A stretch of 64,000 bases of DNA, taken from IMG/VR virus record IMGVR_UViG_3300046653_000093, positions 124,001 through 188,000 of that record; one strand, 5' to 3'. This document shows, one piece after another, positions 97-62,551 of the stretch. Position 1 is the stretch's first letter. Every line of letters starts with the position of its first letter. Below the pieces are notes generated by a model that was not told the DNA's origin, did no database searches, and was given only the letters and a program-made list of their open reading frames with translations. A program made the position numbers and the translations under genes.

Positions 97-129
97 AGCA
101 TTCCTATCAGTAAGAATATATAATTATGC

Positions 130-810
130 CTATTTATTGCCCCATATTTCTATAAACGTTTTCTTAGACTTCAAATACAGATCTGATAATACTTTCTTCC
201 CGGTAACTCTGCCAATGTGTCTGACAGGCACATCAACAACTTTAAACTCAATACCAAGGCCCTTAGCTCTAAAGGATAGGTCAGTATCCTCGAAGTAAGA
301 TATGAACTTAGTAGAAAATGGACCAACATCGCCTTCTAGAATCAAACGATCCCAAGTAGCAACAGAGGCAGTGATATTCCATCCGCTTAGGTAGAAAAGA
401 AACCCAGTCGTAGGAAGCTTGTTCATCTCACGAACAAAGTTCAAATGAATATCTAACAGCCCAATGGTTGGACCTACAAGGAACCCATTTTGAGCCTCAC
501 GAATAATAGGCTCTGTCCACACAGAATTTTCCTCGGCAATACGAATATCATTGTTGAGGAACATTATGTTTTCATAACCGAGACTGACAGCCCTTTCGTA
601 ACCAGTATTGCACCCCTTAGCAAACCCAAGATTCTTGGAATGTCGTACGACAGACAATCTGGCTGATGATTGTAGTTGTTTGGTACTGTCTGTGCTTCCA
701 TTATCCACTACAACAAACCCATGGTCTTGTGGAAGATGGGATAGATCTGATAATGCGCGCTTTGTATATGCCCAATTGTTCCAGGCCGGAATAACGATAG
801 CTAAACTCAT
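130..810 (-). CDS. Glycosyltransferase family 2 (GT-A; WbbL/rhamnosyltransferase-like)
   Basis: Motifs IVIPAWN, VVVDNGSTD, NLGFAKGCN, FLNND and YFEDTDLSFRA. Confidence 0.9.
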   Translation of the reverse strand: MSLAIVIPAWNNWAYTKRALSDLSHLPQDHGFVVVDNGSTDSTKQLQSSARLSVVRHSKNLGFAKGCNTGYERAVSLGYENIMFLNNDIRIAEENSVWTEPIIREAQNGFLVGPTIGLLDIHLNFVREMNKLPTTGFLFYLSGWNITASVATWDRLILEGDVGPFSTKFISYFEDTDLSFRAKGLGIEFKVVDVPVRHIGRVTGKKVLSDLYLKSKKTFIEIWGNK

Positions 811-822
811 TTATTTCTCCAT

Positions 823-1944
823 TCAAGGTACGCACATGTCTATAATTTTTTGGGCTGCATTATTCCAAGTGAACTTGCTAGCAGTATCTGTCATATTTTG
901 AGCAAACCCAGCTTTCAATGAATCTAATTCAAATACAGCCCTTCGAAGTTTTTGGGCAGCGTCATCAGTATCAATCTCAAAATGAACAGCAAATGGATTG
1001 AATGCCCAATATTGATGATCTCTTGGTGCCCTTGTGATTGTGCCATCTATAAGAATAGAATTCTCATCATTACAGAAATCTAGTTGTCCACCATATCTAG
1101 GAACTACATTAACAATTCCAGAAGCTAGAGCTTCCAATGATGGTAGATGCCAACACTCAGCATAAGTAGCAGAGAAATTTATATCACAAGACTTATAGAT
1201 GTCTGCGATATTTGTTATATATGAATGGACAAACTCTACTTCGGCGTGCTGTGGAAACTTAGATTGAAAAGTTTTAAACAACGCAGTGAAGTCTATGTCA
1301 AATGGATGGTCTTTCTTGTTATGCTTGAATACTTTAGCTATCAAACATACATCATCATCCTTGGTAAAAGCTTTACCAAAAGCCTTAAGAGCTAAATGTA
1401 ATGCTTTGCGCCGATGTGGCTGGGCAATATTAAGAAGTATCTTCTTTGTCTTCCTAGTATTTAGCTTGAATGTATTATCACTCTTGAAATCTTCAAGATT
1501 TATTCCATGAGGAACTACCATCATCTTTTCTATGGGGATACCCATACTAATAAATACATCTCTAGAGAAATTAGATGAAGGAAGAACAAGGTCAGTTGAT
1601 TTGTAAAACTTAGAAAAACCTTGAAGTAATGCTAAGTACTTATCATCTGACCTTTTATTGTTGTATTCGTAATTCCAAATACCAAATCTATTCTTTGTAC
1701 CCCATTTAAGATAATTTGGCCAATTATGAGGTGCTGTGTAGCTAATTTGGCAGTCATATAATCCAGATGGTTCTTGTTTAACAAATGGCATTATATCCTC
1801 TGGTATAAATCTCTTTTCAAGTCCATCTGTAGAAATAAACTCTACATTATGTCCTAACTTAATAAGTGATCTGCCTAAATTCTGCCCAACCACACTCCAA
1901 CTATGATTTTGGCCAAATAGAAATTGTTGGATTTTTATTCTCAT
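823..1944 (-). CDS. Glycosyltransferase family 4 (GT-B)
   Basis: PSSNFSRD, VVPHGINLEDF, RRK, E-x7-E motif ECWHLPSLEALASG, C-terminal FTWNNAAQKI. Confidence 0.9.
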   Translation of the reverse strand: MRIKIQQFLFGQNHSWSVVGQNLGRSLIKLGHNVEFISTDGLEKRFIPEDIMPFVKQEPSGLYDCQISYTAPHNWPNYLKWGTKNRFGIWNYEYNNKRSDDKYLALLQGFSKFYKSTDLVLPSSNFSRDVFISMGIPIEKMMVVPHGINLEDFKSDNTFKLNTRKTKKILLNIAQPHRRKALHLALKAFGKAFTKDDDVCLIAKVFKHNKKDHPFDIDFTALFKTFQSKFPQHAEVEFVHSYITNIADIYKSCDINFSATYAECWHLPSLEALASGIVNVVPRYGGQLDFCNDENSILIDGTITRAPRDHQYWAFNPFAVHFEIDTDDAAQKLRRAVFELDSLKAGFAQNMTDTASKFTWNNAAQKIIDMCVP

Positions 1945-1982
1945 ATACTATATGAGATATTGAATTACATATCCTCGACTTA

Positions 1983-2117
1983 TTACTCGCAATCACCTGC
2001 ATCGCAAGCTACCGCTCCGGCATCCGAAACAGATGCATCAGCTTGGTGATTTGGCTTGTTGGTACAAGAGACTAATAAAACCGACAAAAACAAAAACAAT
2101 GCAACGAACCCTTTCAT
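1983..2117 (-). CDS. Small lipoprotein (44 aa)
   Basis: Manual translation MKGFVALFLFLSVLLVSC-TNKPNHQADASVSDAGAVACDAGDCE: basic N-terminus, hydrophobic core, lipobox LVSC; GGAGA RBS upstream. Not in the ORF track. Confidence 0.75.
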   Translation of the reverse strand: MKGFVALFLFLSVLLVSCTNKPNHQADASVSDAGAVACDAGDCE

Positions 2118-2131
2118 TTTATTCTCCATTT

Positions 2132-2189
2132 TAAAGCAGCAATACCCAGTCACTCATAAATGAATGGCATTAGGTAACTACTGTTTTAG
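2132..2189 (-). promoter_or_regulatory. Long imperfect RNA hairpin just 5' of the lipoprotein RBS
   Basis: On the - strand UAAAACAGUAGUUACCUAAUGCCAUUCAU pairs with AUGAGUGACUGGGUAUUGCUGCUUUA using several G-U pairs. Confidence 0.4.
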
Positions 2190-2193
2190 TTTT

Positions 2194-5193: not shown

Positions 5194-5195
5194 AT

Positions 5196-12004: not shown

Positions 12005-15000
12005 TTATCTAGTATCAAGTTTAGCTAAAACATTGTTCGCTTGTATGTATTGATTACTCTGTGCCGTAATACTTAGTACCTGGCCAGCAGCTCCATCCTT
12101 GTTGAATTCTAAGATTCGAACACGGTCAACTCCATTTACTGTATAAGCCACATTAATAAAATCTGAAGAATCTATGGTCGTAGCCAATGCAGTTGAGTTC
12201 AATGAATTAGTGACTGCATCCTCTACATTTTGAAGAACAACAGCACTAGAAGTATCAAAACCAGGAGAAACGACAATTGCCAAAGTGATATTAACTAAGA
12301 TTGGTACGGCGGCCTTGACTAAAACATCAGCTCCGATAGGTCTTGTTCTTTCGATGTTGAATGTATTGTCCGTAATTACTTGATTTGCATTATAGTGTAT
12401 AGTGATTCTTTCATTTGGCTTAGGAGCTAAATAATCATAATATGCAGTATACCTTGTGCCCTGTACCGGCTGATTCTGAGGCGCAATAGAAAGCGTTGCT
12501 GACTGCGAAGTGGTGGAAGTAAATCCGCTGGAAATTGACACAACATCAACAAATGCAAATCTCTTTTGAGTATACAGAGTCCCACTCTTGCTGAATGATA
12601 CGTTTTCTATATCGCTGGTCTTGCTAATATAGAATGTAACTCTGATCTTATCACCAATCTTTGGCAAATTAGCATTGTTACCAACGGTGTTAGGAATTGC
12701 TATTTGCGTAGGAGTTAGGCTTGAGTTGCTAGTAGCCTCAAATTTAGAAAAACTATTATCACGAATCGAATATCCAAATACATCATAGACATGATCTATA
12801 GAAATCACTTCCGTACCAGATAGTTCCACCTTTTCAAAACCTACCAAACTTATTATTGTAAGATTGGATGGAATTGACTGATTGCTGTTCAAACCCAAAG
12901 CTGTTCGTATCAGGGATGAAAAATCTTGAACCAAACCATTCGCGGTGGCAGTTAATATTTTATCAAAAACTCCCTGGATTGTTGTGCCGGAAACAGTGAT
13001 TACGCCTGGAGAAATAGTTCCAGCAATTGTTAGCTTCAACCTAGTTGGAGCCTTTCTAAGATTGAATTCAATTGGAAGAGCTGTGTTTGGTATCGGCGAA
13101 GGATTTGGAAAGTATATATGAGTTGTCGGTTGAGTTCCAAATATATTACCTGTTCCAAAATAAAACCCATTGTCATTTCTAAAAATTGGCAATGTAGACA
13201 ATGCTGTCGAAGGAACAAGTTGATTGATGTTAGCCAAATAATTGACCTCAACAATCGTCCCGGCAACAACATTGGTTGATGATGGAAGGGTGATTACATT
13301 ATCACTAAAGCTTCCAGAAATACCATTGCTTATGAATTGATCAATGGCATTATACCTTATATTTACTAAATCTCCAATCTGCGCAGTTGTGTCCGTTGGT
13401 AAATAAACAGTAAATCCGCTAAAACTTCCATCTTTGGTACCGGTGTTGAAAACCTCGTCATTATTAGAAGACTCAACTACCGAGACAACATTTGATACCA
13501 AGCCGGTCACAACAACAGCCAACCTATTGCTGATAAGCTGTACAAAGCCATACCCATCAGTAAACACATTAATAGATACAACTGCATTTACCGGATGAGT
13601 AACTGTAACTGTTTTTGTGTTAACTCCAGTTACCACAGACTCTTCTCTGCGCACAACGTTTGAATATCCCCAATCAATACTATCTACAACGTCACGGATG
13701 TTATCAGAGGATACTTTATTATCAAAATCCCAATTTAGATCATAATTGAAAATCCAAACGTAGTCTACTTGAAGAATATCACTTACAGCTGGAAGGGTAG
13801 AACCTGAAATTGTAATGCGGCCGGTGGTGTTTTGGCTCCCTCCGTCTGGATTTTGATTTGTAACTATGTAGCGCTCTCCAGTTGTCTGGTTGAAAACTCT
13901 GGTAACCGCAGTGATTGGGGAGTGAGATAATTGAATGGATGACCGATCTGCCGGACTTACATTGCTATTTTCGTTAACTATTTGAATGTTTTGATTAACT
14001 GCACTAATCAAAGTAACATCAGAAAAATTGGTAGAGTCCTGGCTATTGAATTTACCCTTAGTAATATCCTCTGCTAAATCTCTAATCCTATCATCGACCC
14101 AATGCAAACGATCAAATCCCCATGGGCTTCCAGCGTACACACCGGTGTCTCGCAGCAATTCATAGTTTCCAGATACAACTCTAGATGCATCTACACTCTT
14201 TAGAGCGAAGTTAGAACCGCTAGAAGATCCGGTAATGCTAATGATATTGGTAACTGGCTGATTTGGCAGTTGTTGATTATTGATATCATCAATTCTCTTT
14301 CTAGAGACCGTCTTGTTGGCATCTGTGGTAATTTGCCCAAGAACAAAGTCATTCGAAGGATCAGTTGGATCATCTTTGTTGCTATGATCAAAGTATATGA
14401 ATCCGTCTATAATTTCAACCAAACGGAAGCCATAAGCGTAAAGGTCTACTTTCCCACCAGTCCCTTCAGACACAATCGTCTTGGTGCCATCTGCCGCCGT
14501 GAATACCTGTGTTCCATCGCGAGTCATTAAAGGATCGCCGGGGCCAACCACTAAACAGTCTATGACATCCGAATCTGCTATAATTGTATTCTTATAGCCA
14601 AGAGCAGTTCCGGTATTTGATCCGCTGAAAATACCAAGAATTCTACGTTTGAAAGACGAATCAGTCTCGGCTGAAGCTCCACCTTGAAAGGAAGCTGCAT
14701 TTGTGACATTTGAAACTCCAGGAATCGTAGTATTATTCAGCGAATAACTGGAAATATTTCCATTACTTCCAGTAGATGTGGCTGTTACCTGGGCCTCAAC
14801 GGCATACTGATCTGTGATTGCTGCGAAAGCTAAAGCTGCAGAATACTTCGAGGCAGTGGCTCGATAGGTGTTCTTATTGTTCACAGCTACCGTAAAGGAA
14901 TTGATGACTGTAAACGAAGCTCCATTACTTGCCGTTACCACTCCGCCGGCATTAATTGGAATATCAGCCTCAATTGAATTGAAGGTAAGGATTGCAGTAC

Positions 15001-15262
15001 CAATCGATGGAGACCCTTGCTTACGAGACGCGCCAAAATTGGATGCTAAGGCGTCCAATTCTGAACCTAAAGACAGGAATAGCGATTGAGCTGATTGAAC
15101 GCTCTGCAATTCTTCATACAAGCTTCCCAATTGAACAGCTGGGCCGTCAATAAGAAGATCACGAGCCACCTGACCAGGTTGTAGGTCAAGTTGTGGCTGC
15201 GCAGTTCTGTAAAAATCTATACTTCCGAGAACAATATCATTTGCAGTCCTAACCCGTGCCAT
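12005..15262 (-). CDS. Baseplate wedge protein, gpJ/gp6-like
   Basis: ELDALASNFGASRK, GSNGNI, VTNAASFQGGASAETDSSFKRRI, GTALGY, and C-terminal VNGVDRV; GAGGT RBS. Confidence 0.9.
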   Translation of the reverse strand: MARVRTANDIVLGSIDFYRTAQPQLDLQPGQVARDLLIDGPAVQLGSLYEELQSVQSAQSLFLSLGSELDALASNFGASRKQGSPSIGTAILTFNSIEADIPINAGGVVTASNGASFTVINSFTVAVNNKNTYRATASKYSAALAFAAITDQYAVEAQVTATSTGSNGNISSYSLNNTTIPGVSNVTNAASFQGGASAETDSSFKRRILGIFSGSNTGTALGYKNTIIADSDVIDCLVVGPGDPLMTRDGTQVFTAADGTKTIVSEGTGGKVDLYAYGFRLVEIIDGFIYFDHSNKDDPTDPSNDFVLGQITTDANKTVSRKRIDDINNQQLPNQPVTNIISITGSSSGSNFALKSVDASRVVSGNYELLRDTGVYAGSPWGFDRLHWVDDRIRDLAEDITKGKFNSQDSTNFSDVTLISAVNQNIQIVNENSNVSPADRSSIQLSHSPITAVTRVFNQTTGERYIVTNQNPDGGSQNTTGRITISGSTLPAVSDILQVDYVWIFNYDLNWDFDNKVSSDNIRDVVDSIDWGYSNVVRREESVVTGVNTKTVTVTHPVNAVVSINVFTDGYGFVQLISNRLAVVVTGLVSNVVSVVESSNNDEVFNTGTKDGSFSGFTVYLPTDTTAQIGDLVNIRYNAIDQFISNGISGSFSDNVITLPSSTNVVAGTIVEVNYLANINQLVPSTALSTLPIFRNDNGFYFGTGNIFGTQPTTHIYFPNPSPIPNTALPIEFNLRKAPTRLKLTIAGTISPGVITVSGTTIQGVFDKILTATANGLVQDFSSLIRTALGLNSNQSIPSNLTIISLVGFEKVELSGTEVISIDHVYDVFGYSIRDNSFSKFEATSNSSLTPTQIAIPNTVGNNANLPKIGDKIRVTFYISKTSDIENVSFSKSGTLYTQKRFAFVDVVSISSGFTSTTSQSATLSIAPQNQPVQGTRYTAYYDYLAPKPNERITIHYNANQVITDNTFNIERTRPIGADVLVKAAVPILVNITLAIVVSPGFDTSSAVVLQNVEDAVTNSLNSTALATTIDSSDFINVAYTVNGVDRVRILEFNKDGAAGQVLSITAQSNQYIQANNVLAKLDTR

Positions 15263-15317
15263 GTTACCTCAAAGCTACAAAATAGCATATATCCACTGCT
15301 TTCTGAATACCGGATTA

Positions 15318-15746
15318 TTAGCTAGTTACTACAGCAAAGGAAATAGGCACACTCTGGAAAGCTTTATTGATAACCGTCAGATTCACGAAGTAATATCGAG
15401 GATCATCCTTAGCTTGAACAATGGAGACGTTTTGGACTGCAGAAATTTGCTCTTCAGCTGTTACAATTTGATTGCTCTTTATTTGGTTCTGTTGGAGATC
15501 CTTCAGGCGTTCAATGCTGGCTCGCAATTGCTGAGTTGCAACATCTTGTGCAAAATCTACATCACTAGTTCCAATCAAAACCTGGCTTACTGGAGACCCA
15601 TACGCCGGAAAGAAAGGATTAGACCCCAATTGAGTGCTGACCAGCTTCAGAATATCCTGGGTTAGCTTGTCAGAATCCTCTACAATAGCCAAATCTCCAT
15701 TTTGGATAACTAAATCTCCACCAAAAAGCTTCAAATCAAATGACAT
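15318..15746 (-). CDS. Baseplate wedge/sheath initiator, gp25/gpW-like
   Basis: GDLAIVEDSDKLTQDILKLVSTQLGSNPFFPAYGS signature; size; position before gpJ. Confidence 0.85.
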   Translation of the reverse strand: MSFDLKLFGGDLVIQNGDLAIVEDSDKLTQDILKLVSTQLGSNPFFPAYGSPVSQVLIGTSDVDFAQDVATQQLRASIERLKDLQQNQIKSNQIVTAEEQISAVQNVSIVQAKDDPRYYFVNLTVINKAFQSVPISFAVVTS

Positions 15747-15760
15747 ACACTTATACTCAA

Positions 15761-17398
15761 TTATCCCTTATTTCTTACATCCCCAATTCCGCCATCCTTG
15801 GGAGATCCCTTTAGACGATCAAATATATAATCACCATATTGTAGCAAGCTGGAAACTGCCGATGTTAGCGTTTCATAAGCGGTAACAGAGTTTCCTGGAC
15901 TATTAACTCGATTCTGAGTTGCGTCATTTGCAAGTTCAGTGATACTATTTAACCTAGCCGCAGCGGAGTCATCAATCAAATTAAGTAGTGTTGGAACGTC
16001 CAATGCCCAAAGAGAAAGGTAAATGGCAATAATATCAATGAGGCCAAGCCCACTTACTTCGCCACCAATAATTTCGATTATTCTTAGAGCATCACTACCC
16101 TGTGCTTCCAATGAAGATCTTTTTGAGTTTTCATCAGCTAAATCATTCTCAAAAGTATTAGCCACATTGCTAAATTCAGATATTGTAAAATCGCCATACA
16201 CTAAAGATGAATTATCATCATTGGTTCCAATATCAACTTGTGTCTTTGCAAGAAGAGATTTAACTTTCAATTCAGATAATCTGCGTTCAATTTCCCAAGA
16301 ATCTAGGTAATAGCTTGGGACAACAAACGTAGAATTAACCACAGAACCAGATTCTGGCCCGCCCTCATTAGGCATTGGAATCCAAATTATATCTTTGCCG
16401 ATATCAGCAATTGTCTTCACTGCATTGTAATATACATTAATAAGACCTTTGTATGTCTTGAATAAATCATTTACTGTATATACATCTATCAATCCCTCTT
16501 GGAATAGTCTAGCAGCGTCATCTTCGCTAATTCCAACACCAATCAAACCAGCTTGTGTACTAATATTTGGTACCACTGTTTGAGCAGCTGTAAGCAAACT
16601 CTGTAAAACATTACTTTCACGAAGTTTAGTTCGTATGATAAATTCCAAACCTGGGCGTTTTGCATACTTACCAGATTCATATTCCAAATCTTTTTTATCT
16701 AGAAATGGCTGACCAACTAGCACACTATTAGACCCTGATTTTGGTTCTACATTCGATGTAATAACCAAATCAGTAATGAACGGTGCAAGTGGATGTGATA
16801 CGGTCTCGAACTTATTGACTATTGCAGATCCATCTGAATTCTGGAAAAATCTATTTATATATTGAGTGCGAGCCGGAATTGCCTGTGGTGTTAGCGTAAT
16901 ATCATCAAGTGATCCAACATCAATGGAAAATTTACGCTGACCATTCGGAGTTGCTAGCGAAAGCCCAAAAACAGAGGTGTCGCCATTACGTGCTGAAAAT
17001 AGATTGGTCCTATATTGAGCCCCATTCTCCCTATCAGAAATAGCCTTCTTGACACTATCAGGTATTTTGCCATCTATGCTTTTCTGATGGTCTTTATCCT
17101 TGAGTGGAAAGCCTGGACTAATTAAACTACCATCAGGAGAAATGGTGGGAAGACCAAGCATTCTATAGAACGTATGACATCTGCTTTCCGAAGGTGAGCT
17201 AGATGTGGATAGGTCAGCCTGAATTAAATCACCATTTACAACCGGAGAAACATGACTTCTATACAAATCAATTGGGCGCATAAATTTGGCCACCAAATCA
17301 TTGATGTCTAAATCAATAGCCCTAATATCATCTAATGGATCTTTTGGAAAATGATCCCCGACATTATTAAACCATGTATCTTTGGTAACAGTTACCAT
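15761..17398 (-). CDS. Hypothetical baseplate-region protein
   Basis: 545-aa ORF abutting neighbours within the baseplate operon; no recognisable motif. Confidence 0.6.
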   Translation of the reverse strand: MVTVTKDTWFNNVGDHFPKDPLDDIRAIDLDINDLVAKFMRPIDLYRSHVSPVVNGDLIQADLSTSSSPSESRCHTFYRMLGLPTISPDGSLISPGFPLKDKDHQKSIDGKIPDSVKKAISDRENGAQYRTNLFSARNGDTSVFGLSLATPNGQRKFSIDVGSLDDITLTPQAIPARTQYINRFFQNSDGSAIVNKFETVSHPLAPFITDLVITSNVEPKSGSNSVLVGQPFLDKKDLEYESGKYAKRPGLEFIIRTKLRESNVLQSLLTAAQTVVPNISTQAGLIGVGISEDDAARLFQEGLIDVYTVNDLFKTYKGLINVYYNAVKTIADIGKDIIWIPMPNEGGPESGSVVNSTFVVPSYYLDSWEIERRLSELKVKSLLAKTQVDIGTNDDNSSLVYGDFTISEFSNVANTFENDLADENSKRSSLEAQGSDALRIIEIIGGEVSGLGLIDIIAIYLSLWALDVPTLLNLIDDSAAARLNSITELANDATQNRVNSPGNSVTAYETLTSAVSSLLQYGDYIFDRLKGSPKDGGIGDVRNKG

Positions 17399-31402: not shown

Positions 31403-33868
31403 TTAGCTATTAAGCTTACCAACGTTGATCAAAATATAAATCCAATTAGTTGGATATACTGGTTGAACAGCCACAGTAATATTCCACTGCCTTGGCTCTA
31501 CTGAATCTCTATTTACAGTCAAACCTCCATAAGTAGTGATCAACCTCTGTTGAATGAAGGTTTGCATTAGAGACTGAGCAACAGCAAACAAAGTAGCTTT
31601 GAATGTTGGAGTCTCTGCTCGTCCAATGTATGGAGCGTAAGCTCTGCGCATAGAGAAGGAGATATAATCGCGAATAAATACAATGCTAATTTCCTCTTCA
31701 GTTGGCTCAAGAGAAGAAACTGTCGTCTTGCCCCAGATTACATTACCACCACCCTGGACAGGAGTAAGTACAGTAATTCCAGAGTTTACGATATTTTCTA
31801 CAACCAATGGAGAGAAAAGCTTGTTACGCAGAATACTAAATCCAACCAATCTCTTATTCGTAAGAGGTTCTTGAATTTGTGTATTACCAGAGAAATAACC
31901 TGCTACTGCCGCCGCAATAAAGAATCCGTCAATGAGAATGTTGTTTGCCCCAGCCTGAACGACAATCTGATCAGGATAGAAGTATACAACTCGGTACGAA
32001 TCTCCAAATGCATCTGGAACACTATAGTTAGCCAAATCCTCGGTATTTCCTACCAAAATATCCGCAACTGATGCGCCTTGAATACCTTCAAGAATACCGA
32101 TGTCTTCAACTGCTGCAGGTTTATTACCAATTACATTATCCGGCGTAAGGCCCTGAATAGCGCCTATGAACAAAAGCCTTTCATGTTTATTGCGGATGTC
32201 GCTCTGTGTCTCAACATGCACTTTTCCATTCTGGAAAATAGCACTAATCGTCTGGCTTGGTAGAGGCACAACCATATCGATATCGATTGCTTCCGCTGCT
32301 GTATAAGCTTCTAGCCATCCGGCATCATAAAAGTCAGCGTCCTTGGCATCTATTAAGGTGCAACGTAGCGACTGACCAAGGCTAAGTGCCATGTCTCTGG
32401 TCCAAAGGATTCGAGCACTAGATAATGATGAATCAACAACTTCGAACTGAATACCATTCTCACTAACAAATGGGGTGGCACGCTTGATTTTTAGCTGATC
32501 TTGAACAACTGCAACAATCTCAAATGTTCCATCGTTTCCATTTATAGAATCGAATATTACCACCGAGCGTGTAGCGGCAAGGTCTTCAAGGCCAAACGCA
32601 ACGGTAGCACTTGATAGCTGAGCATAATAACCATCTACCAAGTAGCCATCGCTTACCAAAACACCATCAGCTCCTTCTTTTTGTACCGAAGACTCTTCGA
32701 CAACCGTATAGGAATATGCAAAGTTATCCAAGAATGTAGCTGGATTTTCTGTGTAGAAAGGCTCCTTATTTGGAATAATTTGAGTCTCTAGCTTGGTAAC
32801 TGGATCAGTTACAAAGAAATGAATATCGTTATCAGAATCTGGGGTAACATTCAAAGGAAGAATGAATGTAACATCATCAACATCATTGAAGCCATCGGCT
32901 GATTTAACAAGATCATATGATAAGCGTCTTGGAACTGAAGGCTTGGCTTGAATTGTATAGATGCCAGGAGTTCCGTTTGCCCATGCTAATTGAGCACCCA
33001 ACGATACTCTATTGGTAACCGATGGTTGTCCATGCTTTGCAATTACAGCATTCAAATCTGAGAAGAACTGTGGATCATTGAGTGATGCAAAAGAGATATA
33101 ACGAGCAGTAAGATTATCTCCACTTACCAAAGTTCCGCTTTGAACTTCAACAACAAAGTTGTCTCCTTCAATGAACGGCGTAGCGCCTTCCGAGATTGAA
33201 AAACTCAAAACTCCATTAGAAATAAGTATTCCATTTGATTGCCAAGTGATTTGATTTCCGTAACCGTCTAGTAGAGTTCCGCTTACCGAACCACGAGCAA
33301 TAAACTTTGCGTAACCATCGATTGGTTGTCCCATCGAATTTCGACGAACGCTTGAGCAACGAATCGTCCAAGTTTCTGGCGGGGCATTCACATCAACGAG
33401 CGTCAGATTTGAGATAGTTCCATTTCCAGAATTGCTTCCAGCCGCCAAATAGAACGAGCCTCCCTGATCTACTAATGAAGCACCCTGCAACAAAATCTCT
33501 CCAGTTGTTGGGTCTACCTCGGCATCATATCCGGGGAAGTTCCCATCAATGGTATGTTCAAACACCTTAAGTGTGATACCATTCTTGAAAAGCAAAGATC
33601 TGTTTTGAACAACTGGAGCTACGACAGTCTGCCCTTTCCCAAAAAGGAAGCGACGCCCATCAGAGCCTTTGGTTGTGGAATAAGTTGGGTCAAACCCATC
33701 GTTGCCCTTGCCATTAGCTGATCCAACAAGAACTTCTTCCGTTAAACCTTCACCAATAATAACTGGTATACGATTACCAACTGGTACGCTAACACCGGTC
33801 TGAATCGTTCTGGTTTCGGAATACGCACCAGGTACAACGCTAGAGGCTCCAGGTATGTCGGCTGCCAT
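31403..33868 (-). CDS. Contractile tail sheath protein
   Basis: N-terminal PGAYSET; C-terminal AAAVAG, EPLTNK, GITVL, WGKTT, EISIVFIRDY, VQPVYPTNWIYI; GAGGT RBS. Confidence 0.92.
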   Translation of the reverse strand: MAADIPGASSVVPGAYSETRTIQTGVSVPVGNRIPVIIGEGLTEEVLVGSANGKGNDGFDPTYSTTKGSDGRRFLFGKGQTVVAPVVQNRSLLFKNGITLKVFEHTIDGNFPGYDAEVDPTTGEILLQGASLVDQGGSFYLAAGSNSGNGTISNLTLVDVNAPPETWTIRCSSVRRNSMGQPIDGYAKFIARGSVSGTLLDGYGNQITWQSNGILISNGVLSFSISEGATPFIEGDNFVVEVQSGTLVSGDNLTARYISFASLNDPQFFSDLNAVIAKHGQPSVTNRVSLGAQLAWANGTPGIYTIQAKPSVPRRLSYDLVKSADGFNDVDDVTFILPLNVTPDSDNDIHFFVTDPVTKLETQIIPNKEPFYTENPATFLDNFAYSYTVVEESSVQKEGADGVLVSDGYLVDGYYAQLSSATVAFGLEDLAATRSVVIFDSINGNDGTFEIVAVVQDQLKIKRATPFVSENGIQFEVVDSSLSSARILWTRDMALSLGQSLRCTLIDAKDADFYDAGWLEAYTAAEAIDIDMVVPLPSQTISAIFQNGKVHVETQSDIRNKHERLLFIGAIQGLTPDNVIGNKPAAVEDIGILEGIQGASVADILVGNTEDLANYSVPDAFGDSYRVVYFYPDQIVVQAGANNILIDGFFIAAAVAGYFSGNTQIQEPLTNKRLVGFSILRNKLFSPLVVENIVNSGITVLTPVQGGGNVIWGKTTVSSLEPTEEEISIVFIRDYISFSMRRAYAPYIGRAETPTFKATLFAVAQSLMQTFIQQRLITTYGGLTVNRDSVEPRQWNITVAVQPVYPTNWIYILINVGKLNS

Positions 33869-34554: not shown

Positions 34555-34594
34555 ACAATCTCAGCTTTGCATTAAACTTATGCTCAGATATGCG

Positions 34595-35404: not shown

Positions 35405-35437
35405 ACCGAAATGCTGGATTATGGCGATACGAATAAT

Positions 35438-42339: not shown

Positions 42340-42363
42340 ATTCTAATGCCCCAATATTGCGAG

Positions 42364-43176: not shown

Positions 43177-43190
43177 AAAATAATACTGAA

Positions 43191-45284
43191 CTATTCCATG
43201 TTTGATAGTATTATTGTGTGCGAATGATTTAAAACGGTACCCACAATACCCGCCGAGATCGGGTGGTTGTGCCCACGATCTATACTTGTCATTTGATTTA
43301 TTTGGGAAATATGCCTAATCTTCTCATTAATGGTGATTCTATGCATATGGGCGGGTATGCCTCCAGGGCCCATTACCATTCCAATGGAAGTAAGAATCTC
43401 AGATGGAAGAGTACTAGTGTCACGAATTGAACGAACTTGATAAATAGGATCTGTCTTACGTACACGTACTGCGGTGAACTTCTGAGCACCTGACTCAAAA
43501 AGCATAGTCCTATTTCTATCTACATCGATGATTTCATAACGCCATTCTTCAGTTCCATCTTGATTGAATCTGATTATAAAATCCCCATCCTTGACTGTTG
43601 GTGTCACCAACGTCCAACAATTAGCAATATAGGTATTCTCAATACCTGCGTCTTCACGTTTGAAATCTTCCTTGGTTGGTCCAAAGCGAACCAAAATCTT
43701 GCCGTCACTTTCACGTGGATTGAAATATTGTTCATATCCAGTTACCAAAGAAGTTCCATAAGTATCTATTCCGCGATACGTTGTATTTTCGCGTGTAGAG
43801 CTGGTATGCCGCGATTGCTTTCCTGACCATTGACGTCGAAACAAAACTACCCGCTCTCCAGTGACCTGAAGTAGATACTCCTCTCTCATATCCATGTGTT
43901 CTTGAACGCTCAACCCGCGTACGGACCCATCACATTCCGATCCATCGGCATACTCTCCACCAAAATAGGTTCCTACGCACTTTCCTGATAACCAATCTGG
44001 CAAGAATGTACGATCCCAACCCGCTTGATCGTAGATTGGAAATCCGGCATTTGCAACATCTACAACATTGAGGTTGCCAGTTCCTGATAAGATATCTGTA
44101 CGTTCCCGGAACCCATCTTTATTGGTTCTAGCATACTGCTCATCAAATCTGATGGTAACCATACCAATGGCCACATTAAGATCCTGCCAACCTTCCCAAA
44201 GGCGCACAAATGGATTGTCGTGATGATGTCGGTATCCGTCATATCCATCGATAGTATGCGGACGAGCACCGCTAGGGCCTCCATTAACCACATACCCATC
44301 AACATCCACTAGAAAGTAGTCCCCACGTTTGAATGGAATCGTTCCATTATTAATGGCAAAACTCAAAATACCATTAGAAACAATAACTCCATCAGGATTC
44401 CATATTACAGGATCTCCGTAGCCATCTAAAGCAGAGCCTGTTAGAGATCCAATCGCCCCAAACTTAGCATAGCCATCATTTTCAGAACCATCTAGCGAAC
44501 AGAAAATCTTCCAATCTTGAATTATAGATTTTCCATCTATCAATTCCAAATTTGAAATATAGCCATTACCAACATTATTTCCAACACTATAACCATCTAT
44601 ATAAGATAGACTACTCAAAATATCATCTGATAAATAACCACGTTGTAATCCAGATAGATTTGGGAAAATCAAATATTCTGGACAATGACAATGATGCTCA
44701 CGACGTTCTGAGCAATGGCAATGATGTCCCTTATCGCAATGGTGCTCTTCTGAGCAATTGCATTTTGGCCTTAATGTTCCAACATCAACATGAGAATAGA
44801 ATATTAGTTCGTGTCCAATTTTGACAACTCCAATTGGCGGGAACCCGGCAACATCATTCAAATACATGATGTCATCGGTAGCTGTCATATTCTGAACCAA
44901 AACAGCTTCTGGGGCTATTTTAGATCCTGGATCGCCATCTAAGAGCTGATCGTATAGAAGCGTTCCGGATGCATATGCAGATCCCTTTACAGCAAAATAA
45001 TAGGTTCTTCCAGGGCTAAATGCATCAAAAATATTAAGGGACAGAAACTGATCTTTGGTATTCGGCCTAACTATTAGCTTTACGCCCTCATCATAAATCT
45101 TAGTCTGATTTGTAGACCAATATATGTTGTAAAAAAGATCCCAATTACCAGGCTGCTTTTGCTGAATGTATTCCTTGTACCATTGAAGCGCAACAGTATA
45201 CCCATCCCCACCACATACCACTGTACGAACGCCATGGAGTGATGCGTCAAATGTACGCAGAAATACTGGAGGGTTGCATGCCAT
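43191..45284 (-). CDS. Neck/head-closure-like protein with FN3-like N-terminus, His/Cys insert and sheath-like domain
   Basis: VALQW...YNIYWS...PGRTYYFAVK (FN3-like); C-terminal GERVVLFRR...YGT...GY...WTL.TPTVKDGDFII...RYEI (stopper-like); HxH repeats at the C-terminus. Confidence 0.55.
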   Translation of the reverse strand: MACNPPVFLRTFDASLHGVRTVVCGGDGYTVALQWYKEYIQQKQPGNWDLFYNIYWSTNQTKIYDEGVKLIVRPNTKDQFLSLNIFDAFSPGRTYYFAVKGSAYASGTLLYDQLLDGDPGSKIAPEAVLVQNMTATDDIMYLNDVAGFPPIGVVKIGHELIFYSHVDVGTLRPKCNCSEEHHCDKGHHCHCSERREHHCHCPEYLIFPNLSGLQRGYLSDDILSSLSYIDGYSVGNNVGNGYISNLELIDGKSIIQDWKIFCSLDGSENDGYAKFGAIGSLTGSALDGYGDPVIWNPDGVIVSNGILSFAINNGTIPFKRGDYFLVDVDGYVVNGGPSGARPHTIDGYDGYRHHHDNPFVRLWEGWQDLNVAIGMVTIRFDEQYARTNKDGFRERTDILSGTGNLNVVDVANAGFPIYDQAGWDRTFLPDWLSGKCVGTYFGGEYADGSECDGSVRGLSVQEHMDMREEYLLQVTGERVVLFRRQWSGKQSRHTSSTRENTTYRGIDTYGTSLVTGYEQYFNPRESDGKILVRFGPTKEDFKREDAGIENTYIANCWTLVTPTVKDGDFIIRFNQDGTEEWRYEIIDVDRNRTMLFESGAQKFTAVRVRKTDPIYQVRSIRDTSTLPSEILTSIGMVMGPGGIPAHMHRITINEKIRHISQINQMTSIDRGHNHPISAGIVGTVLNHSHTIILSNME

Positions 45285-45298
45285 AATTACATGCTGGA

Positions 45299-45886
45299 TT
45301 ATCCTACAACATTAATATCAACGTTGAATAGGCTCGCTAATTCCAGCAGTTTTTCACGTCTCTCATCTCTTTTTTTATCATCATCTTTATCACGTGTATG
45401 ATGATCGAGCACCTGATCTACGTACTCCTCTGCCTCATCATCGCTTTTGGTATCAGAAATGTACTTAGTCTGATTGCGAAATCCTTCTTGTTCGGTAGGA
45501 TTATCAAGATAATTATCGTCAGTTGAACCAGGAGTTGCCTTGCTACCAGTAGTTTGCTGGCAAACATGAGTCATCTCATGCGGAAGATAATGATCATTTT
45601 CCTTCATCTTTTCATCGATATGAAGCCTTTCATGTGCAAGGTAATTATCATCATCTCCGCCGGTAAACAGGTCAACGTTCAAATAGATGACACCATGATC
45701 TGTACGCGCCGAAACTGGAATTTTGGCAACACAAATTGGCCACAAATCAAGCTCTTCTCTCTTGATATCATACTCCTTAAGCATGTCTTTGACTACATCG
45801 CTGTCAAAAACTCGCTTCTTGAGCTTATCAATAACAGGGGCCAGCTTCTTGTGTGGAAGGCCTTTGGTTACAATCTCTTCCGGCAT
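45299..45886 (-). CDS. HExxH metallopeptidase-like protein
   Basis: HEMTHVCQQ followed by YLDNPTEQEG; start probably at MPEEIV (45886) rather than 45946. Confidence 0.55.
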   Translation of the reverse strand: MPEEIVTKGLPHKKLAPVIDKLKKRVFDSDVVKDMLKEYDIKREELDLWPICVAKIPVSARTDHGVIYLNVDLFTGGDDDNYLAHERLHIDEKMKENDHYLPHEMTHVCQQTTGSKATPGSTDDNYLDNPTEQEGFRNQTKYISDTKSDDEAEEYVDQVLDHHTRDKDDDKKRDERREKLLELASLFNVDINVVG

Positions 45887-46634: not shown

Positions 46635-46654
46635 ATAAATATGCACTGATATTA

Positions 46655-52008: not shown

Positions 52009-52022
52009 GCCTATATGCCCGG

Positions 52023-52496
52023 TTATTCGTCGTCAATATTTTTCTTGAAAATAGGATCTACGGCCAAAATCGGAGCACGATCTGCCGCATCCATATCTGC
52101 ATTTTCTGCGGCAAAATCTTCAGCAGACCCCTCATCCATATCCAAATCAGGAAACTCAACTTGTTCAATCTCTGGTGGTTTCCTAACAGTACGAGTTGAA
52201 CCCATATCCAAAACATGAGCCACTTCAATCTTCTTGGTAAATATCTGGGGCGCTACAGACCTAATCTTGATATGCTGTCCTTTCTTGTAAATTGAACCGC
52301 TTTGAATGCTATCATCAATCTGCTTTTTTGTGATATTATACATGGATAAGCCATTTTTCTTTTTAGCAAGCAAATTTAAGCTTTGCCCACGGCGAACTGT
52401 AATGGCTAGATCACTAATTGTAATATCTTGAAAACGATTTATATTCGTAACCCAAAGCTCTTCCGGCTTGGCTAGAGGATAAAACCTTTCCTGCAA
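52023..52496 (-). CDS. Hypothetical protein with an acidic C-terminus
   Basis: ORF 52023..52589 overlaps the csp gene; likely TTG start near 52496. Confidence 0.55.
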   Translation of the reverse strand: MQERFYPLAKPEELWVTNINRFQDITISDLAITVRRGQSLNLLAKKKNGLSMYNITKKQIDDSIQSGSIYKKGQHIKIRSVAPQIFTKKIEVAHVLDMGSTRTVRKPPEIEQVEFPDLDMDEGSAEDFAAENADMDAADRAPILAVDPIFKKNIDDE

Positions 52497-52506
52497 TCTC
52501 TGGCTA

Positions 52507-52785
52507 CTACTTTTCAACTTTATCCTCAGATACAATGGCACAATCGCAGACGGTTGTGCTGTCAGCTTCGCTGACAACAGATACTTCAATCGCCTTTGGT
52601 TGCTTTCGATTATTCAAACCAACAGAGAATATGACCTCTTGACCTTTCTTCAAAGTCTTGAAACCTTCGGTGATAATGTCAGACCAATGTATAAATAAAT
52701 CGGCTTCATCTACTCTGGAGATAAATCCGTAACCAAGCTTGGCATCAAACCAAACAACCTTTCCAACATACTTTTCTTCTTGCAT
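52507..52785 (-). CDS. csp: Cold-shock domain protein (CspA family)
   Basis: GKVVWFDAKLGYGFI (RNP1), DLFIHWSDI (RNP2), GFKTLKKGQEV; GAGGA RBS. Confidence 0.93.
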   Translation of the reverse strand: MQEEKYVGKVVWFDAKLGYGFISRVDEADLFIHWSDIITEGFKTLKKGQEVIFSVGLNNRKQPKAIEVSVVSEADSTTVCDCAIVSEDKVEK

Positions 52786-52829
52786 AATCTTCCTCTTAGC
52801 AGGTATAACCTGCGGCTTTCAGAATTATG

Positions 52830-53129
52830 CTAATATATTGCCTTCTTTTTGAGACCAATCTTAATTTCCAAAATCTCTCGCATTAGCAGACATGCAGCAA
52901 ATTCTGCCAAATCACTATAATGTTTCTCAAGAAAAGCCGTATCGTCCCATGCGAAATTGGTAAAGGGCAGAATAGAATTGAATCTAGAAAGTGCTTGATT
53001 GGCAAATTCCACCAATTGGTCTGTTGTATACACGTCATATTCACGATGACATGTATCTAGTCTCAATTTAATCAGCTTCAGAACAATATTGATATTGTTA
53101 ATGGCTACTTGACTATAATCATCAATCAT
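52830..53129 (-). CDS. Truncated head-tail-adaptor-like paralog
   Basis: NINIVLKLIKLRL...DVYTTDQLVEF...FNSILPFTNFAWDDT aligns with 303-aa NINNVVKSLRARL...DVFTVDELVAF...FNEIPHFTLFTWDDT; start likely MIDDY. Confidence 0.55.
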   Translation of the reverse strand: MIDDYSQVAINNINIVLKLIKLRLDTCHREYDVYTTDQLVEFANQALSRFNSILPFTNFAWDDTAFLEKHYSDLAEFAACLLMREILEIKIGLKKKAIY

Positions 53130-53130
53130 A

Positions 53131-53750: not shown

Positions 53751-53751
53751 A

Positions 53752-54840
53752 TTATGTGAATATATCAGGCTTTGGACAATATTTAACGATGGCCTGAGCT
53801 GCAACTCTAGCCTCTCTATCTCCGTAATCTCCCCATTGGGAAATTCGAATATTGTCCTGAGAACTTCCACCATAACCAAGCGCCGTCATGATTGGATTCG
53901 TATTTGAGTGCAAAGATCCACAAGCAGAACCAAGGCCCACAAATATTCCTTCAGCTTCCAATTGAGCCATTACATGTGGACCCATCTTTTTCCCGATGTT
54001 CAAGAAAGTAGCATGTGGAACTCTAGTTGAATTCTCGCCAATTATTTCAATACCAATTGAACTTACTGCTGATTCAATTATAGAGCGAAATGTCAATGCC
54101 CTATGATATCTTGGCTGTAATGTCTTGATAGCTTCTTCTAATGCCACAGAAGCGGCTATAATCATTCCAGCATCAGGTGTTCCTGGCCGATCAAAGTAAT
54201 ATCTACTTCCAGTCCCAAATTCTCTCCACCATTTATTATCTCTTATATATAAGAAACCAACATTTACAGGACCACCAAATTTATGAGCCCCAAATGCAGC
54301 TATCATCAAATTTGGTATACTAGAAACATTAACTGGAATCTTACCAAGTGATTGGCTCATATCACAAAAGAATGGAACCTTAATGTTCTCTATATCTTGT
54401 ATTGTGCCAGTTTCATTCTGTACATGAATACATATAAAAGCAGACTTTTCAGGAGGTGTAAATGTACAAGCTACAATTCCGTCTTTATTTACAAATAAAT
54501 CATTGTTACCAAAGAGTTCTCTAGCTTTTATTGCCACTGATTTATGTTCGATTGTAGAACAGTATACATTCTTGAAATTCTGTTCGCGTAGAAGTTCCAG
54601 GCCCCATTCGCAGGCTTGAGTGCAGGACGAAGTAAATATGATTTGATTGGGATTTTCTGCGCCGATCAATTTGGCAATTTTGGTTCTAGCTGCCTCAATT
54701 TCAGAAGCTGCTTGCCGTCCTGGCATTGAAATTGACATAGCATGGCCATGTCCCCCAATGGACTTATTGAAGTTTATGTATGCTTCAAGAGCTTTTGGAT
54801 GAAGTGGAATATGAGCATTCGAGTCAAGAAATAATTGCAT
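53752..54840 (-). CDS. iscS: Cysteine desulfurase, IscS/NifS-like (PLP-dependent, class V)
   Basis: LDSNA, IIFTS, TIEHKSV, NETGTIQ, DMSQSLGK, AHKFGGP (PLP Lys), RPGTP, GSACGS (catalytic Cys). Confidence 0.88.
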   Translation of the reverse strand: MQLFLDSNAHIPLHPKALEAYINFNKSIGGHGHAMSISMPGRQAASEIEAARTKIAKLIGAENPNQIIFTSSCTQACEWGLELLREQNFKNVYCSTIEHKSVAIKARELFGNNDLFVNKDGIVACTFTPPEKSAFICIHVQNETGTIQDIENIKVPFFCDMSQSLGKIPVNVSSIPNLMIAAFGAHKFGGPVNVGFLYIRDNKWWREFGTGSRYYFDRPGTPDAGMIIAASVALEEAIKTLQPRYHRALTFRSIIESAVSSIGIEIIGENSTRVPHATFLNIGKKMGPHVMAQLEAEGIFVGLGSACGSLHSNTNPIMTALGYGGSSQDNIRISQWGDYGDREARVAAQAIVKYCPKPDIFT

Positions 54841-54860
54841 TAATAGTCTATATATCCCGA

Positions 54861-55373: not shown

Positions 55374-55427
55374 AATTTACCTTGTAAAGTTTAATTTATT
55401 GCTGAAGATTAATTTTTCTCGACTATA

Positions 55428-57056: not shown

Positions 57057-57067
57057 TTGATACTCCT

Positions 57068-57622: not shown

Positions 57623-57660
57623 ATCTACAACATGCATAAATATTAGGTATACAATTATAA

Positions 57661-59019
<1,359 letters not shown>

Positions 59020-59388: not shown

Positions 59389-59470
59389 TATAACCTCAAA
59401 TACATACAAAAATATACCATTGAGCCTTCTAAAACTTAAATATCAAGCTAGAACATCCATATCTATTATA

Positions 59471-60253: not shown

Positions 60254-60324
60254 AAAACCCCTCGCACATGCTGGCGTAGCCGCTGGTTTATCAACAACAT
60301 ACAAAAATATCCGTTGCGCTTCAT

Positions 60325-62492
60325 TTATTGAGCATAGATGCTGTATACATCATTATTTCCTGATTCAGCCACAAGCGATACAGCATTGAGTCCAGTAAGT
60401 GATAGGTTTGAAATTACGAAGGAAGCTCCATTGCCTGTATATGACAAGGTGTTATCAGCTGTAGCCATCCAGATTGTGGCTACATTTGTGGCCATATCTG
60501 GTGCAAGCATGACACAATCTACAGAACCATCAGCATTAACCGTTGCATAGCCTGAAGCCCCACCAACAACTGTACCTAAGGCACCGGTGATCAGGTTGAA
60601 GTTGGCAAATCCAGAGCCTCCACCTACTGCTAAAGCCACCCAATTTCTACCGGTTGGCTTGATACGCACTCGGAAGACAACTGGTCCTCTCACATAACCT
60701 GGTATTGTACCAACCACAGTAGATATATCATGACCGCCAGTGCTATTATCCTCTACCAGTGTTGTGTTGTTCCAAGAAGCGACTCCTGCATCAATAAGGA
60801 ATGAAAGAGTGCCTGTCACAGCCATTGTGCTTGCTACAAGCGAATAGCTTGGTATTCCATGAGCCGAGCCACCAGGAGCCGTTCTCGCCAAAGATACAGA
60901 GCTATTAGGGGTAGTCCAAGGCGCTGGAAAGAATACTGGCGTTGTTCCGTTTAGCGTGACCGAACCACTATTAGTGTAGCGGAACTGTGTTCCCGCCGGA
61001 TTTGGTGGCGTTACTAAATTAACTTTACCGTATGTAACAATATTTCCTGAACCTATAGAGTTAATATTTTCAGGCACAGCTAACTGTCCTCTAACGTTTC
61101 TGATGTCTAAACTGTGGCCCGACACTCCAGTAGTAACCAAGGTAGTTGAACTATCCACAATTAATGCATCGACAATATTATCTTTGCTGATACAAGCATC
61201 ACCATAGATGATACCTGCTGAGATTCCGGACACAAGCAACTTCCCAAAGTGGTTTCTGTTGCACCCAAGAGTTCCATTTGCACCCAAGACTACGAGCGCT
61301 GTAACTAGACCTGGAGTTTGTGCACTCGCATTCAAGTCTGAGATATCATTATCACAGAAATCAGAGCCAGTCCAAAACACGCCTGCAGTACCAATTACAT
61401 TGACAGCCTTGAGTCCGCGAATCGTATTTCGATGGCACCCACACTCATCTGCTGGGATATCAATATTGATCGAAGTTGCGATAAATGGTCCACAGCAGTT
61501 CTCACCAGTGGCCCCATCAATAGTTGAATCCCAAGTAGTATTTAACCATACCGTGTATCCAATATTCTCACTCTTGACATTGCGAACAACAGCACCACGT
61601 TGCCCTTCGATAGCAAACCCAGAACGATTCGAATCAGTGCCATCCAACCCTATCGTAATAACATTATCAACCAAGTTATCTCTACCACTAATATCAAAGC
61701 CAACTAGTGAGGTACTGGATGTTCCTGCTGTTTGCTGGATAATTCCAGGACCAATTACTGAGCATCTCCAAACAGAGATCAACTCAATGAATCGATTGTC
61801 CGCATAGGAACCATCAAAAGCACATAAAATTTTGGCATTATTCAACTTTACATTGAAATTGATTACTGGTGAATATTTATAAATGTTACTTGCAGGTATG
61901 GAGAACAATACAGGGGCATCCAAATTGACAGTTGTGCCAACAACCGATATTGCCTGAAACGAGACCCGTGCACCTTTGTTCGTACTGATCCAAAAATAAT
62001 CTCCAGCTACCAATGGTGTACCAGACCATGTAACTGTGAGACTATTAACTCTAGCCGCAGTAGCTCCAATAGATCCTATTGTGGCGGGAGTTCCTGGGTT
62101 GGCTACAATCGGGCAAGTTCCAAGACCAAAAGTAGTAGTTGTAATTATCGTATTTCCATTAAGATCTAGCGTAATATTAGAACGATATTTCCATTAAGAT
62201 CTAGCGTAATATTAGAACGAGCAGCGATAATGGTGTGATTACAAATATAAGGAAGTGTAGATTTTCTCAACTTTACGGTAGATCCATAAGGTGCCGCTTG
62301 TACAATTGTATTGATTGCAGACCAGTCATCTGTTGTCGAACCATCAATTGGAGGCCCAGCCCAAACGATTACGGAATCATTTCTAGAAACATAACCATCT
62401 GATATGTTATTAAGCTTGATGCTATCTTCCGCTTGAAAGAAACCAAAAGATTCTTCCTTCACATGTCCCGGGAATTTCTGGAATTTAGACAA
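60325..62492 (-). pseudogene. Beta-helix tailspike/fiber gene split by a 35-bp duplication (ORFs 62166..62492 and 60325..62013)
   Basis: DGSTTDDWSAIN...STVKL...Y...I...SNITLDLNG is a pectate-lyase-3-like N-terminus. Removing one repeat copy fuses the two ORFs into a 710-aa frame (...LDLNGNTIITTTTFGLG...GTPLVAGDY...). Confidence 0.8.
62151..62220. repeat. Exact 35-bp tandem duplication causing a frameshift
   Basis: tatttccattaagatctagcgtaatattagaacga x2. Confidence 0.95.
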
Positions 62493-62537
62493 GTTAACCT
62501 CAAATATTTAGCTCCATATATTTACTTACAACAATGA

Positions 62538-62551
62538 TATGCAAAAATATT
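62538..62551 (-). promoter_or_regulatory. Representative copy of intergenic motif NATA-N5-GYATN (candidate phage promoter)
   Basis: AATATTTTTGCATA here; about 15 copies at gene junctions across the window (listed in findings). Confidence 0.55.

Follow-up and report, generated by a model that had tools for sequence, protein, structure and literature searches.

A spaced two-block motif before virion genes as the probable core of late promoters in an uncultivated ~400-kb peat phage

How a phage with a genome of ~400 kb that has not been cultivated marks the starts of its late transcripts is a question raised by a 64-kb stretch of DNA, bases 124001-188000 of a 215.8-kb IMG/VR virus record, which we refer to as the window (coordinates prefixed w). 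An earlier note on this stretch had picked out 15 copies of a motif in which the blocks ATA and GYAT are separated by five unconstrained nucleotides (nt), ATA-N5-GYAT, and had proposed it as a phage late promoter. The phage is myovirus-like, comes from peat metagenomes and is present in sequencing runs of many studies; the window is its virion module, with almost all genes on the - strand, and a 392-kb record of the same phage, G001 (91% complete, 99.997% identical; G001 position = w + 281444), supplies the wider genome. Here, we argue from the pattern of the sequence that ATA-N5-GYAT probably forms the core of late promoters that lack a -35 box, both in this phage and in its relatives.

All 15 of the 14-mers lie on the - strand between open reading frames (ORFs), each oriented with the genes, as had been reported. 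In the window as a whole the excess is marginal, with 39 matches (25 on the - strand, 14 on the +) against 29.9±5.1 in shuffled sequence, and at least 39 in 4 of 100 shuffles; the signal resides in placement and direction, not in the window-wide count. The 15 sites fall at gene boundaries, within ~1.9 kb (~3%) of the window, the remaining ten - strand matches are scattered across ~62 kb of ORFs, and the + strand of the intergenic DNA in the window has no match. A further match to the expression, at w29963, was left out of the earlier list; it lies within conserved coding sequence and is a chance match. In G001, the sense-oriented inter-ORF pieces contain 27 matches, where 500 dinucleotide shuffles gave 8.4±2.8 with a maximum of 18, and the same pieces read in antisense contain 10. 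A second tally of G001 counted 28 co-oriented and 6 anti-oriented intergenic sites, and 59 and 58, with no strand bias, in coding DNA; the motif is strand-specific and far denser between ORFs than within coding DNA. It is also spacing-specific, as a spacer of four nt (N4; co-/anti-oriented 4/7) or of six (N6; 11/11) abolishes the excess. An unbiased dyad scan of the inter-ORF DNA of the late block also recovered ATA-N5-GCA, 11 times against 1.5 expected and twice in antisense, at rank 19 only, beneath the Shine-Dalgarno (SD) and stop-codon signals. The ORFs are crude longest-ORF calls, on which counts near gene ends hinge.

A fuller consensus is G-R-ATA-W-T-N3-G-Y-A-T-N5-Y-R, in which a G stands two bases ahead of ATA at 31 of the 60 intergenic co-oriented sites of four genomes (against 19% of coding occurrences) and ATA is followed by W and then T. 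No -35 block accompanies it: in an alignment of 16 sites, no column from 15 to 50 nt ahead of ATA carries more than 0.5 bit of information. Exactly 6 nt separate GYAT from a following ATG at 21 of the 60 sites, an arrangement found in G001 and G002 together at 12 of 38 intergenic but only 7 of 147 coding occurrences. These ATG-class sites, not all of which are independent (they represent roughly ten gene families by our count), have neither an SD nor room for one between GYAT and ATG, and the ORFs behind them have no earlier start codon available and N-termini conserved from residue 1. Most other genes carry AGGAG-type SDs, and no upstream signal in the genome is stronger than that of AGG-N6-ATG-like dyads. 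The base before the ATG is a pyrimidine in all 21 ATG-class sites, against 50% of SD-led genes (n=302), and at the eight long-leader sites of the window the base 7 nt past GYAT is a purine in every case, preceded by a pyrimidine in six. Translational coupling cannot account for the ATG-class sites at G001 13439 and 382598, since neither has a co-directional gene upstream. A pyrimidine-purine step 7 nt after the conserved T resembles a start below a -10 element, which would place GYAT at about -10 to -7 and ATA at about -18 to -16, and the strict 6-nt distance and the lack of an SD would be most simply explained by leaderless mRNAs. The start had been expected at or just after GYAT; the pattern points instead to a position ~7 nt further on, which in a third of sites would be the A of the ATG.

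Relatives were found by search with the 697-amino-acid (aa) and 269-aa virion proteins of the window, giving records at 64-88% amino-acid identity, of which the larger ones compared are G002 (194 kb), G003 (131 kb) and G005 (106 kb, 27.5% GC). Intergenic co-oriented copies outnumber anti-oriented ones in G002 (10/2; shuffles 2.7±1.6), G003 (14/6, with 3/1 for N4 and 1/2 for N6) and G005 (8/1, with 1/1 and 0/0), and the fixed spacer and single orientation noted originally are thus repeated in all three. At orthologous gene fronts, in up to eight lineages, ATA and GYAT are constant while the five spacer bases and the flanks vary, and the G and the C/T of GYAT are retained even in G005. Before the tail-sheath operon, all eight lineages examined have an exact motif, with variable N5. 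In front of the 269-aa gene it is exact in 5 of 8 and has one mismatch in the other three, with the 6-nt spacing and a pyrimidine before the start in all eight (the start being GTG in one), and before a 604-aa gene, in seven lineages, it is the sole conserved island in otherwise unalignable intergenic DNA. The front of the 697-aa gene is conserved in L002/L038 and in G002, which has GTAT and a different spacer, and in G005/L044 the motif is kept with the ATG farther away. Site 52014..52027 is conserved in L002, G002 and G005 with a different N5 and spacer. In G003, site 15306..15319 is kept with a constant purine at the predicted +1 and the preceding 6 nt changed, and site 15752..15765 appears with GCAT and other spacer bases at equal spacing. 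Gain and loss of the motif at some fronts is expected of internal promoters, and the genes behind the sites include baseplate, sheath-operon and fibre-like genes.

We infer promoter activity, start site, leaderless translation and reading factor from these patterns, and the mechanism that we favour runs as follows. A phage factor would redirect the core RNA polymerase of the host, which would read the 12-base-pair (bp) two-block element and begin transcription on the purine 7 nt past GYAT. In about a third of sites this purine would be the A of the start codon and the late mRNAs would be leaderless (with GUG in one lineage), and the remaining sites would have leaders of 3-40 nt, most of them equipped with an ordinary GGAG-type SD. 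The phage factor would most likely be the phage's own divergent sigma-70-family protein of 219 aa, encoded at G001 257748-258407(-), ~23 kb left of the window, where it is surrounded by genes for helicase and ribonucleotide reductase. This protein scores 63.5 bits with TIGR02937 (cut-off 42.9) over residues 37-215 and 30.4 bits with Sigma70_r2 (cut-off 24), matches phrog_351 (E 7e-17) and has orthologs in G003, G004 and G005 at 61-73% identity; tblastn against 50,697 GenBank phage records gave no match. We infer that it reads ATA-N5-GYAT, and a host core with a phage sigma appears the most economical model. In the ribonucleotide reductase gene that sits just downstream of the sigma gene (a 1308-aa ORF; L026:1-1158(-), G001 ~253.8-257.7 kb) we also observed an intein-like insert with a LAGLIDADG-type motif.

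The earlier note had named a phage sigma or a phage RNA polymerase as possible readers, and only the first of these was found. For multisubunit polymerases, neither PF00562 (Rpb2_6) nor PF00623 (Rpb1_2) matched G000 at E<=1, and PF00562 was equally silent in G001 and G002. No beta-prime-type catalytic motif ([NSTAG]A[DE][FYL]DGD, or a polymerase-like DxDGD site) occurs in the G001 ORFs of at least 150 aa, the DxDGD matches being acidic or calcium-binding-like repeats (one in an ORF with a dockerin domain) and ribonucleotide reductase. Pfam and PHROGs scans of large ORFs gave lectin, dockerin, baseplate-wedge and tail-sheath matches or nothing. The T7-type profile PF00940 did not match either, but its positive control was silent, so that search is uninformative. 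The multisubunit negative leaves room for very divergent subunits and for genes in the 9% of the genome that the record lacks.

Among described systems, the gp36-dependent promoter of phiEco32 comes closest; it consists of one element, tAATGTAtA, and transcription begins 6-8 bp downstream of it (PMC8948821). As in the present phage, these promoters have a single region without a -35 box and stand before late genes, and phiEco32 uses the host core with a phage sigma-70-family protein (PMC8948821). The likeness extends to a GTAT(A) block and to the same distance from it to the start, which is here predicted rather than mapped. Unlike phiEco32, the element described here has two blocks with a free 5-nt spacer, and its candidate sigma has a region-4-like part, whereas gp36 is said to lack region 4. 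We therefore regard ATA-N5-GYAT as a new consensus for a promoter element of a kind already known.

A second parallel is with the promoters of leaderless mRNAs. In mycobacteria and for lambda cI, the -10 element of such promoters lies 6-7 nt before the A or G of the start codon. The ATG-class sites share with them the constant 6 nt between the end of the putative promoter element and ATG or GTG, the lack of an SD and the pyrimidine at -1, and differ in having GYAT and ATA rather than TAnnnT and in belonging to a motif that serves SD-led genes too. Leaderless transcripts are described as common in mycobacteria (PMC4633059).

Several observations weigh against the favoured mechanism. About a third of the G001 intergenic matches (~8 of 27) are expected by chance; at the front of site 15752..15765, G005 has an SD in place of the motif, and the motif is missing before the 697-aa gene in three other lineages. 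The YA within GYAT also fits a start-site dinucleotide, so that a +1 at that A is an alternative register. Region 4 of the 219-aa sigma (Sigma70_r4_2, 25.1 bits, just below the cut-off of 25.7) is a better fit to a promoter with a -35 box, and the protein could for this reason serve a second oriented intergenic motif, GTCGAG[AG], instead; G005, which keeps the sigma and ATA-N5-GYAT and has no intergenic GTCGAG, is a weak point in favour of the link to ATA-N5-GYAT. There is, moreover, a second candidate factor, a 145-aa GerE/LuxR-type protein with a sigma-region-4-like helix-turn-helix, encoded next to a Toprim primase gene at G001 382891-383328(-) (L025:2891-3328). A search of sequencing runs found no RNA runs containing the phage. 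The 3' end of the 145-aa gene is overlapped by a small antisense ORF, L025:2616-2894(+), which is preceded by a perfect ATA-N5-GTAT-N6-ATG.

Of the other explanations, the one that fares best, although it is unlikely, is an undetected phage RNA polymerase of the AR9/phiKZ non-virion type, for which AATA would lie at -11 to -8, transcription would start on the A of GYAT and ATG-class genes would have 8-nt leaders. The AR9 late consensus, A(-11)ACA-N6-U-A/G(+1), has a similar shape and no -35 box, and that of phiKZ is T(-3)ATG(+1) (PMC7598289). Like the present motif, these late promoters are short and close to or overlapping the start; AATA-N5-G-YA can be written on the AR9 template, its YA would be a good start-site dinucleotide, and the G001 record is only 91% complete. 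AATA-N6-Y-A is of the AR9 shape, with a T at the position of the AR9 C, and TATG or CATG occurs in only 4 of 15 sites. AR9 leaders are 26-491 nt long (PMC5312081), whereas a third of the sites here would have no leader and a start 7 nt past the motif. Against such a polymerase stand the lack of multisubunit polymerase genes in the 392-kb record, the profile and catalytic-motif negatives given above, and the lectin and dockerin domains, in place of polymerase domains, of the giant ORFs in the window. A start on the A of GYAT would also leave the rigid ATG spacing and the 21 pyrimidines of 21 unexplained.

Somewhat less probable again is a signal acting in the RNA, either a processing site in a polycistronic late mRNA or a substitute for the SD at a fixed distance from the AUG. 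It would suit the third of sites whose ATG is 6 nt away, the usual place of an SD, in genes that have none, and most sites do lie inside long strings of co-directional genes without an upstream terminator. More than half of the intergenic co-oriented sites, however, have no ATG at 6 nt; the eight long-leader sites of the window have leaders of 3-40 nt, mostly with a normal SD of their own, and two ATG-class sites lack an upstream co-directional gene. Two blocks with strict spacing and a free spacer are typical of DNA recognition, and neither conserved pairing or hairpins nor any Rfam family was found in the window.

We give still less weight to host-type promoters read by the host primary sigma factor without a phage factor. 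The primary-sigma promoter of Bacteroidota has a -7 element, TAnnTTTG, and a -33 element, TTTG. The sites at 59403, 60298 and 62538 contain TATTTTTG, which fits TAnnTTTG, that at 57631 has one mismatch, and those at 125 and 52826 read GCATAAT, a portion of the sites that relatives retain, as would suit a YATAAT-type -10. The TTT of TAnnTTTG is unconserved at most sites, however, with exact matches in 3 of 15; no TTTG lies ~20 bp (19-21 bp) upstream in register, and the heavy use of AGGAG-type SDs is unlike Bacteroidota. Reading YATnnT as a -10 hexamer was rejected, since its last T is unconserved (T at the T(-7) place in 7 of 16 only) and the start would fall past the ATG in the ATG class. A further reading, in which GYATA would be a -35 box like those of forespore sigma factors, was also rejected, because the -10 box would fall within ORFs.

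That chance and composition at AT-rich junctions, stop codons (TAA/TAG within ATAA/ATAG) and start contexts produced the motif is very improbable, for although the whole-window count barely exceeds the shuffles and the stop codon of the upstream gene overlaps the motif at 7 of 15 sites, dinucleotide-shuffled inter-ORF pieces fall far short of the 27 observed, antisense, N4 and N6 versions show no excess, ATA is just as fixed where the stop is 3-15 nt upstream, and the motif is conserved in up to eight lineages and at 27.5% GC. The promoter reading has come through every in-silico test able to refute it, with its start register changed.

If ATA-N5-GYAT is a late promoter, it provides an annotation key to a clade of uncultivated huge phages, marking operon starts, corrected start codons and genes without an SD, and, with the 219-aa protein, a compact candidate pair of sigma and promoter that could be tested in vitro without culture of the phage. 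The motif also suggests that these phages, with 51 tRNA genes and no detectable polymerase, reprogram the host enzyme. A broader proposal, which we make tentatively and regard as doubtful, is a clade-wide leaderless late regulon in ~400-kb phages without a polymerase of their own, using a divergent sigma with no BLAST-level kin in GenBank phages and an element of the -10 region, in which about a third of late mRNAs start on AUG, possibly tied to a late shift in translation initiation. Were the leaderless reading true, a large share of huge-phage virion genes would bypass SD-dependent initiation, which bears on late translation control.

Table 1. Motif sites, their predicted transcription starts and other features of the window
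Feature	Position (w)	Strand	Predicted +1	Leader and start codon	Gene or context
Motif site	125..138	-	w119	~23-nt leader, weak SD, ATG w96	Gene in glycosyltransferase cluster, extends past left end of window
Motif site	15306..15319	-	w15300	38-nt leader, GAGG SD	Baseplate wedge gene
Motif site	15752..15765	-	w15746 (A of ATG)	GTAT, then ATG after exactly 6 nt; no SD	Baseplate protein gene
Motif site	34579..34592	-	w34573		Tail-sheath operon
Motif site	35410..35423	-	w35404 (A of ATG)	GCAT, 6 nt, ATG; no SD	Conserved 269-aa virion-module gene
Motif site	42345..42358	-	w42339 (A of ATG)	GCAT, 6 nt, ATG	604-aa repeat-rich fibre-like gene
Motif site	43182..43195	-		GTAT, 6 nt, ATG	LAGLIDADG homing endonuclease gene, w42364-43176
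Motif site	45290..45303	-	w45284 (A of ATG)	GCAT, 6 nt, ATG	697-aa gene
Motif site	46640..46653	-		GCAT, 6 nt, ATG w46634; start shifts from GTG	ORF w46347-46646
Motif site	52014..52027	-	w52008 (A of ATG)	GCAT, 6 nt, ATG	301-aa gene
Motif site	52826..52839	-		~35-nt leader with SD	Cold-shock-domain gene
Motif site	57631..57644	-	w57625	+1 is 3 nt ahead of ATG w57622; start shifts from TTG w57709	
Motif site	59403..59416	-	w59397	T-rich spacer; GAGG, ATG w59388; start shifts from TTG w59409	
Motif site	60298..60311	-	w60292	T-rich spacer; SD, ATG w60253; start shifts from TTG w60304	
Motif site	62538..62551	-	w62532	T-rich spacer; SD leader to TTG w62492	
Terminator-like hairpin and T run	62562-62595	-			Directly upstream of site 62538..62551
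Baseplate wedge gene	12005-15262	-			
Baseplate protein gene	15318-15746	-			
Tail sheath gene	31403-33868	-			
Cold-shock-domain protein gene	52507-52785	-			Within virion module
Class-V aminotransferase gene	53752-54840	-			Within virion module
Collagen-repeat protein gene	57661-59010	-			Within virion module

The sites are listed in Table 1, where four ORFs have been moved from GTG or TTG to an ATG, bearing out the suggestion that the motif helps to correct start codons. For sites 43182..43195 and 46640..46653, too, the predicted +1 is the A of the ATG, at w43176 and w46634. Two sites are less certain than the others. Site 125..138 may belong to another promoter class, because its front in G003, the only relative with the ortholog, has AGA in place of ATA, and site 52826..52839 may be another kind of promoter, because the orthologous fronts in G002 and G005 retain GCATAAT without ATA. 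The 301-aa gene is followed by a 1167-aa gene with esterase and lectin domains (Pfam), whose product is probably a fibre. The hairpin upstream of site 62538..62551 (-25.7 kcal/mol in a ViennaRNA fold of the 60 upstream nt) is the only strong terminator-like hairpin upstream of any site. In w44001-64000, sites resembling sigma-70-type promoters show no enrichment (39 against 52±8 in shuffles); both they and simple terminator-like sites (7 against 13±3.6) are scarcer than in shuffles, and signals of host type appear to be avoided in the late block. A conserved three-codon mini-ORF, w34560-34573(-), lies right where the sheath-operon transcript is predicted to begin. It reads Met-Gln-Ser-stop (Met-Gln-Asn-stop in G003) and has been retained by G001, G003 and G005; the orthologous places considered include those of L064-L071.

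T4 offers a further comparison. Its late promoters carry TATAAATA at -10 and are read by the gp55 sigma with gp33 and the sliding clamp, and its free-standing homing endonuclease genes have their own late promoter copy. The motif described here resembles them in having no -35 box, in being AT-rich near -10, in standing before myovirus virion genes and in the separate copy held by an endonuclease gene. The difference from the T4 late consensus asserted in the earlier note is nonetheless real: the aligned sites read [A/G]ATA[A/T][T/C], none matches TATAAATA and only site 125 contains ATAAATA; GYAT adds another constant block; no gene resembling those for gp55 or gp33 was identified, and the sigma here has two domains (r2 and r4). 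The same note held that the motif precedes both homing endonuclease genes, and it does precede the two genes in question. The LAGLIDADG gene (Pfam 1e-8, phrog_4645 3e-48) has a site of its own, and relatives at 83% identity lack both this copy of the motif and the space that the gene would need. The second, a 228-aa gene at w33868-34554(-), bears only a weak resemblance to endonucleases (phrog_2340, E 0.004); it separates site 34579..34592 from the sheath gene, and G002, G003 and G005 have no ortholog of it. Since that site is the conserved putative promoter of the sheath operon, the gene seems to have been inserted behind a promoter that was already there. Both genes look mobile.

Other oriented motifs occur in the genome. 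GTCGAG[AG] has 21 co-oriented and 6 anti-oriented intergenic copies in G001, mostly at 149-250 kb, with two in the window, at 1974-1979(-) and 55418-55423(-), and it is present in G003 as well. By our count ~9 of ~25 intergenic copies lie 26-33 nt before an ATG without an SD, a -35-like distance for a leaderless start, and some adjoin tRNA genes; as GTCGAG is also strand-biased within ORFs (66/29), codon use explains part of its signal. Outside the window, the left 135 kb of the genome has a third motif that recurs, TCTTTGGTAA (G001 11906, 28539, 33120, 68005, 76296, 128298 and 133195), with some copies ~4 nt before a start codon that has no SD.

Among GenBank phages, w40000-60000 has no nucleotide match and the tail sheath has only distant kin, in Bacillus phage G and an Eggerthella phage. 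Four peat DNA runs compared over w41001-47000 yielded contigs of the same strain only and no information on the motif. Other products of the window include giant proteins with lectin or dockerin domains and glycosyltransferases. The virion proteins of G005 (L057-L062) and G001 are 45-70% identical, yet their G+C contents are 27.5% and 43%, and this 15-point gap suggests hosts of very different base composition inside one phage clade. The 51 tRNA genes of G001 (ARAGORN) lie mostly in one cluster, in the region 117762-227000 (for example 185825-197569 and 210332-210422). The long late ORFs of the window are normal under table 11, with no sign of recoding there, and one of the tRNAs has the anticodon CTA, reading the amber codon, and is labelled Pyl by ARAGORN.

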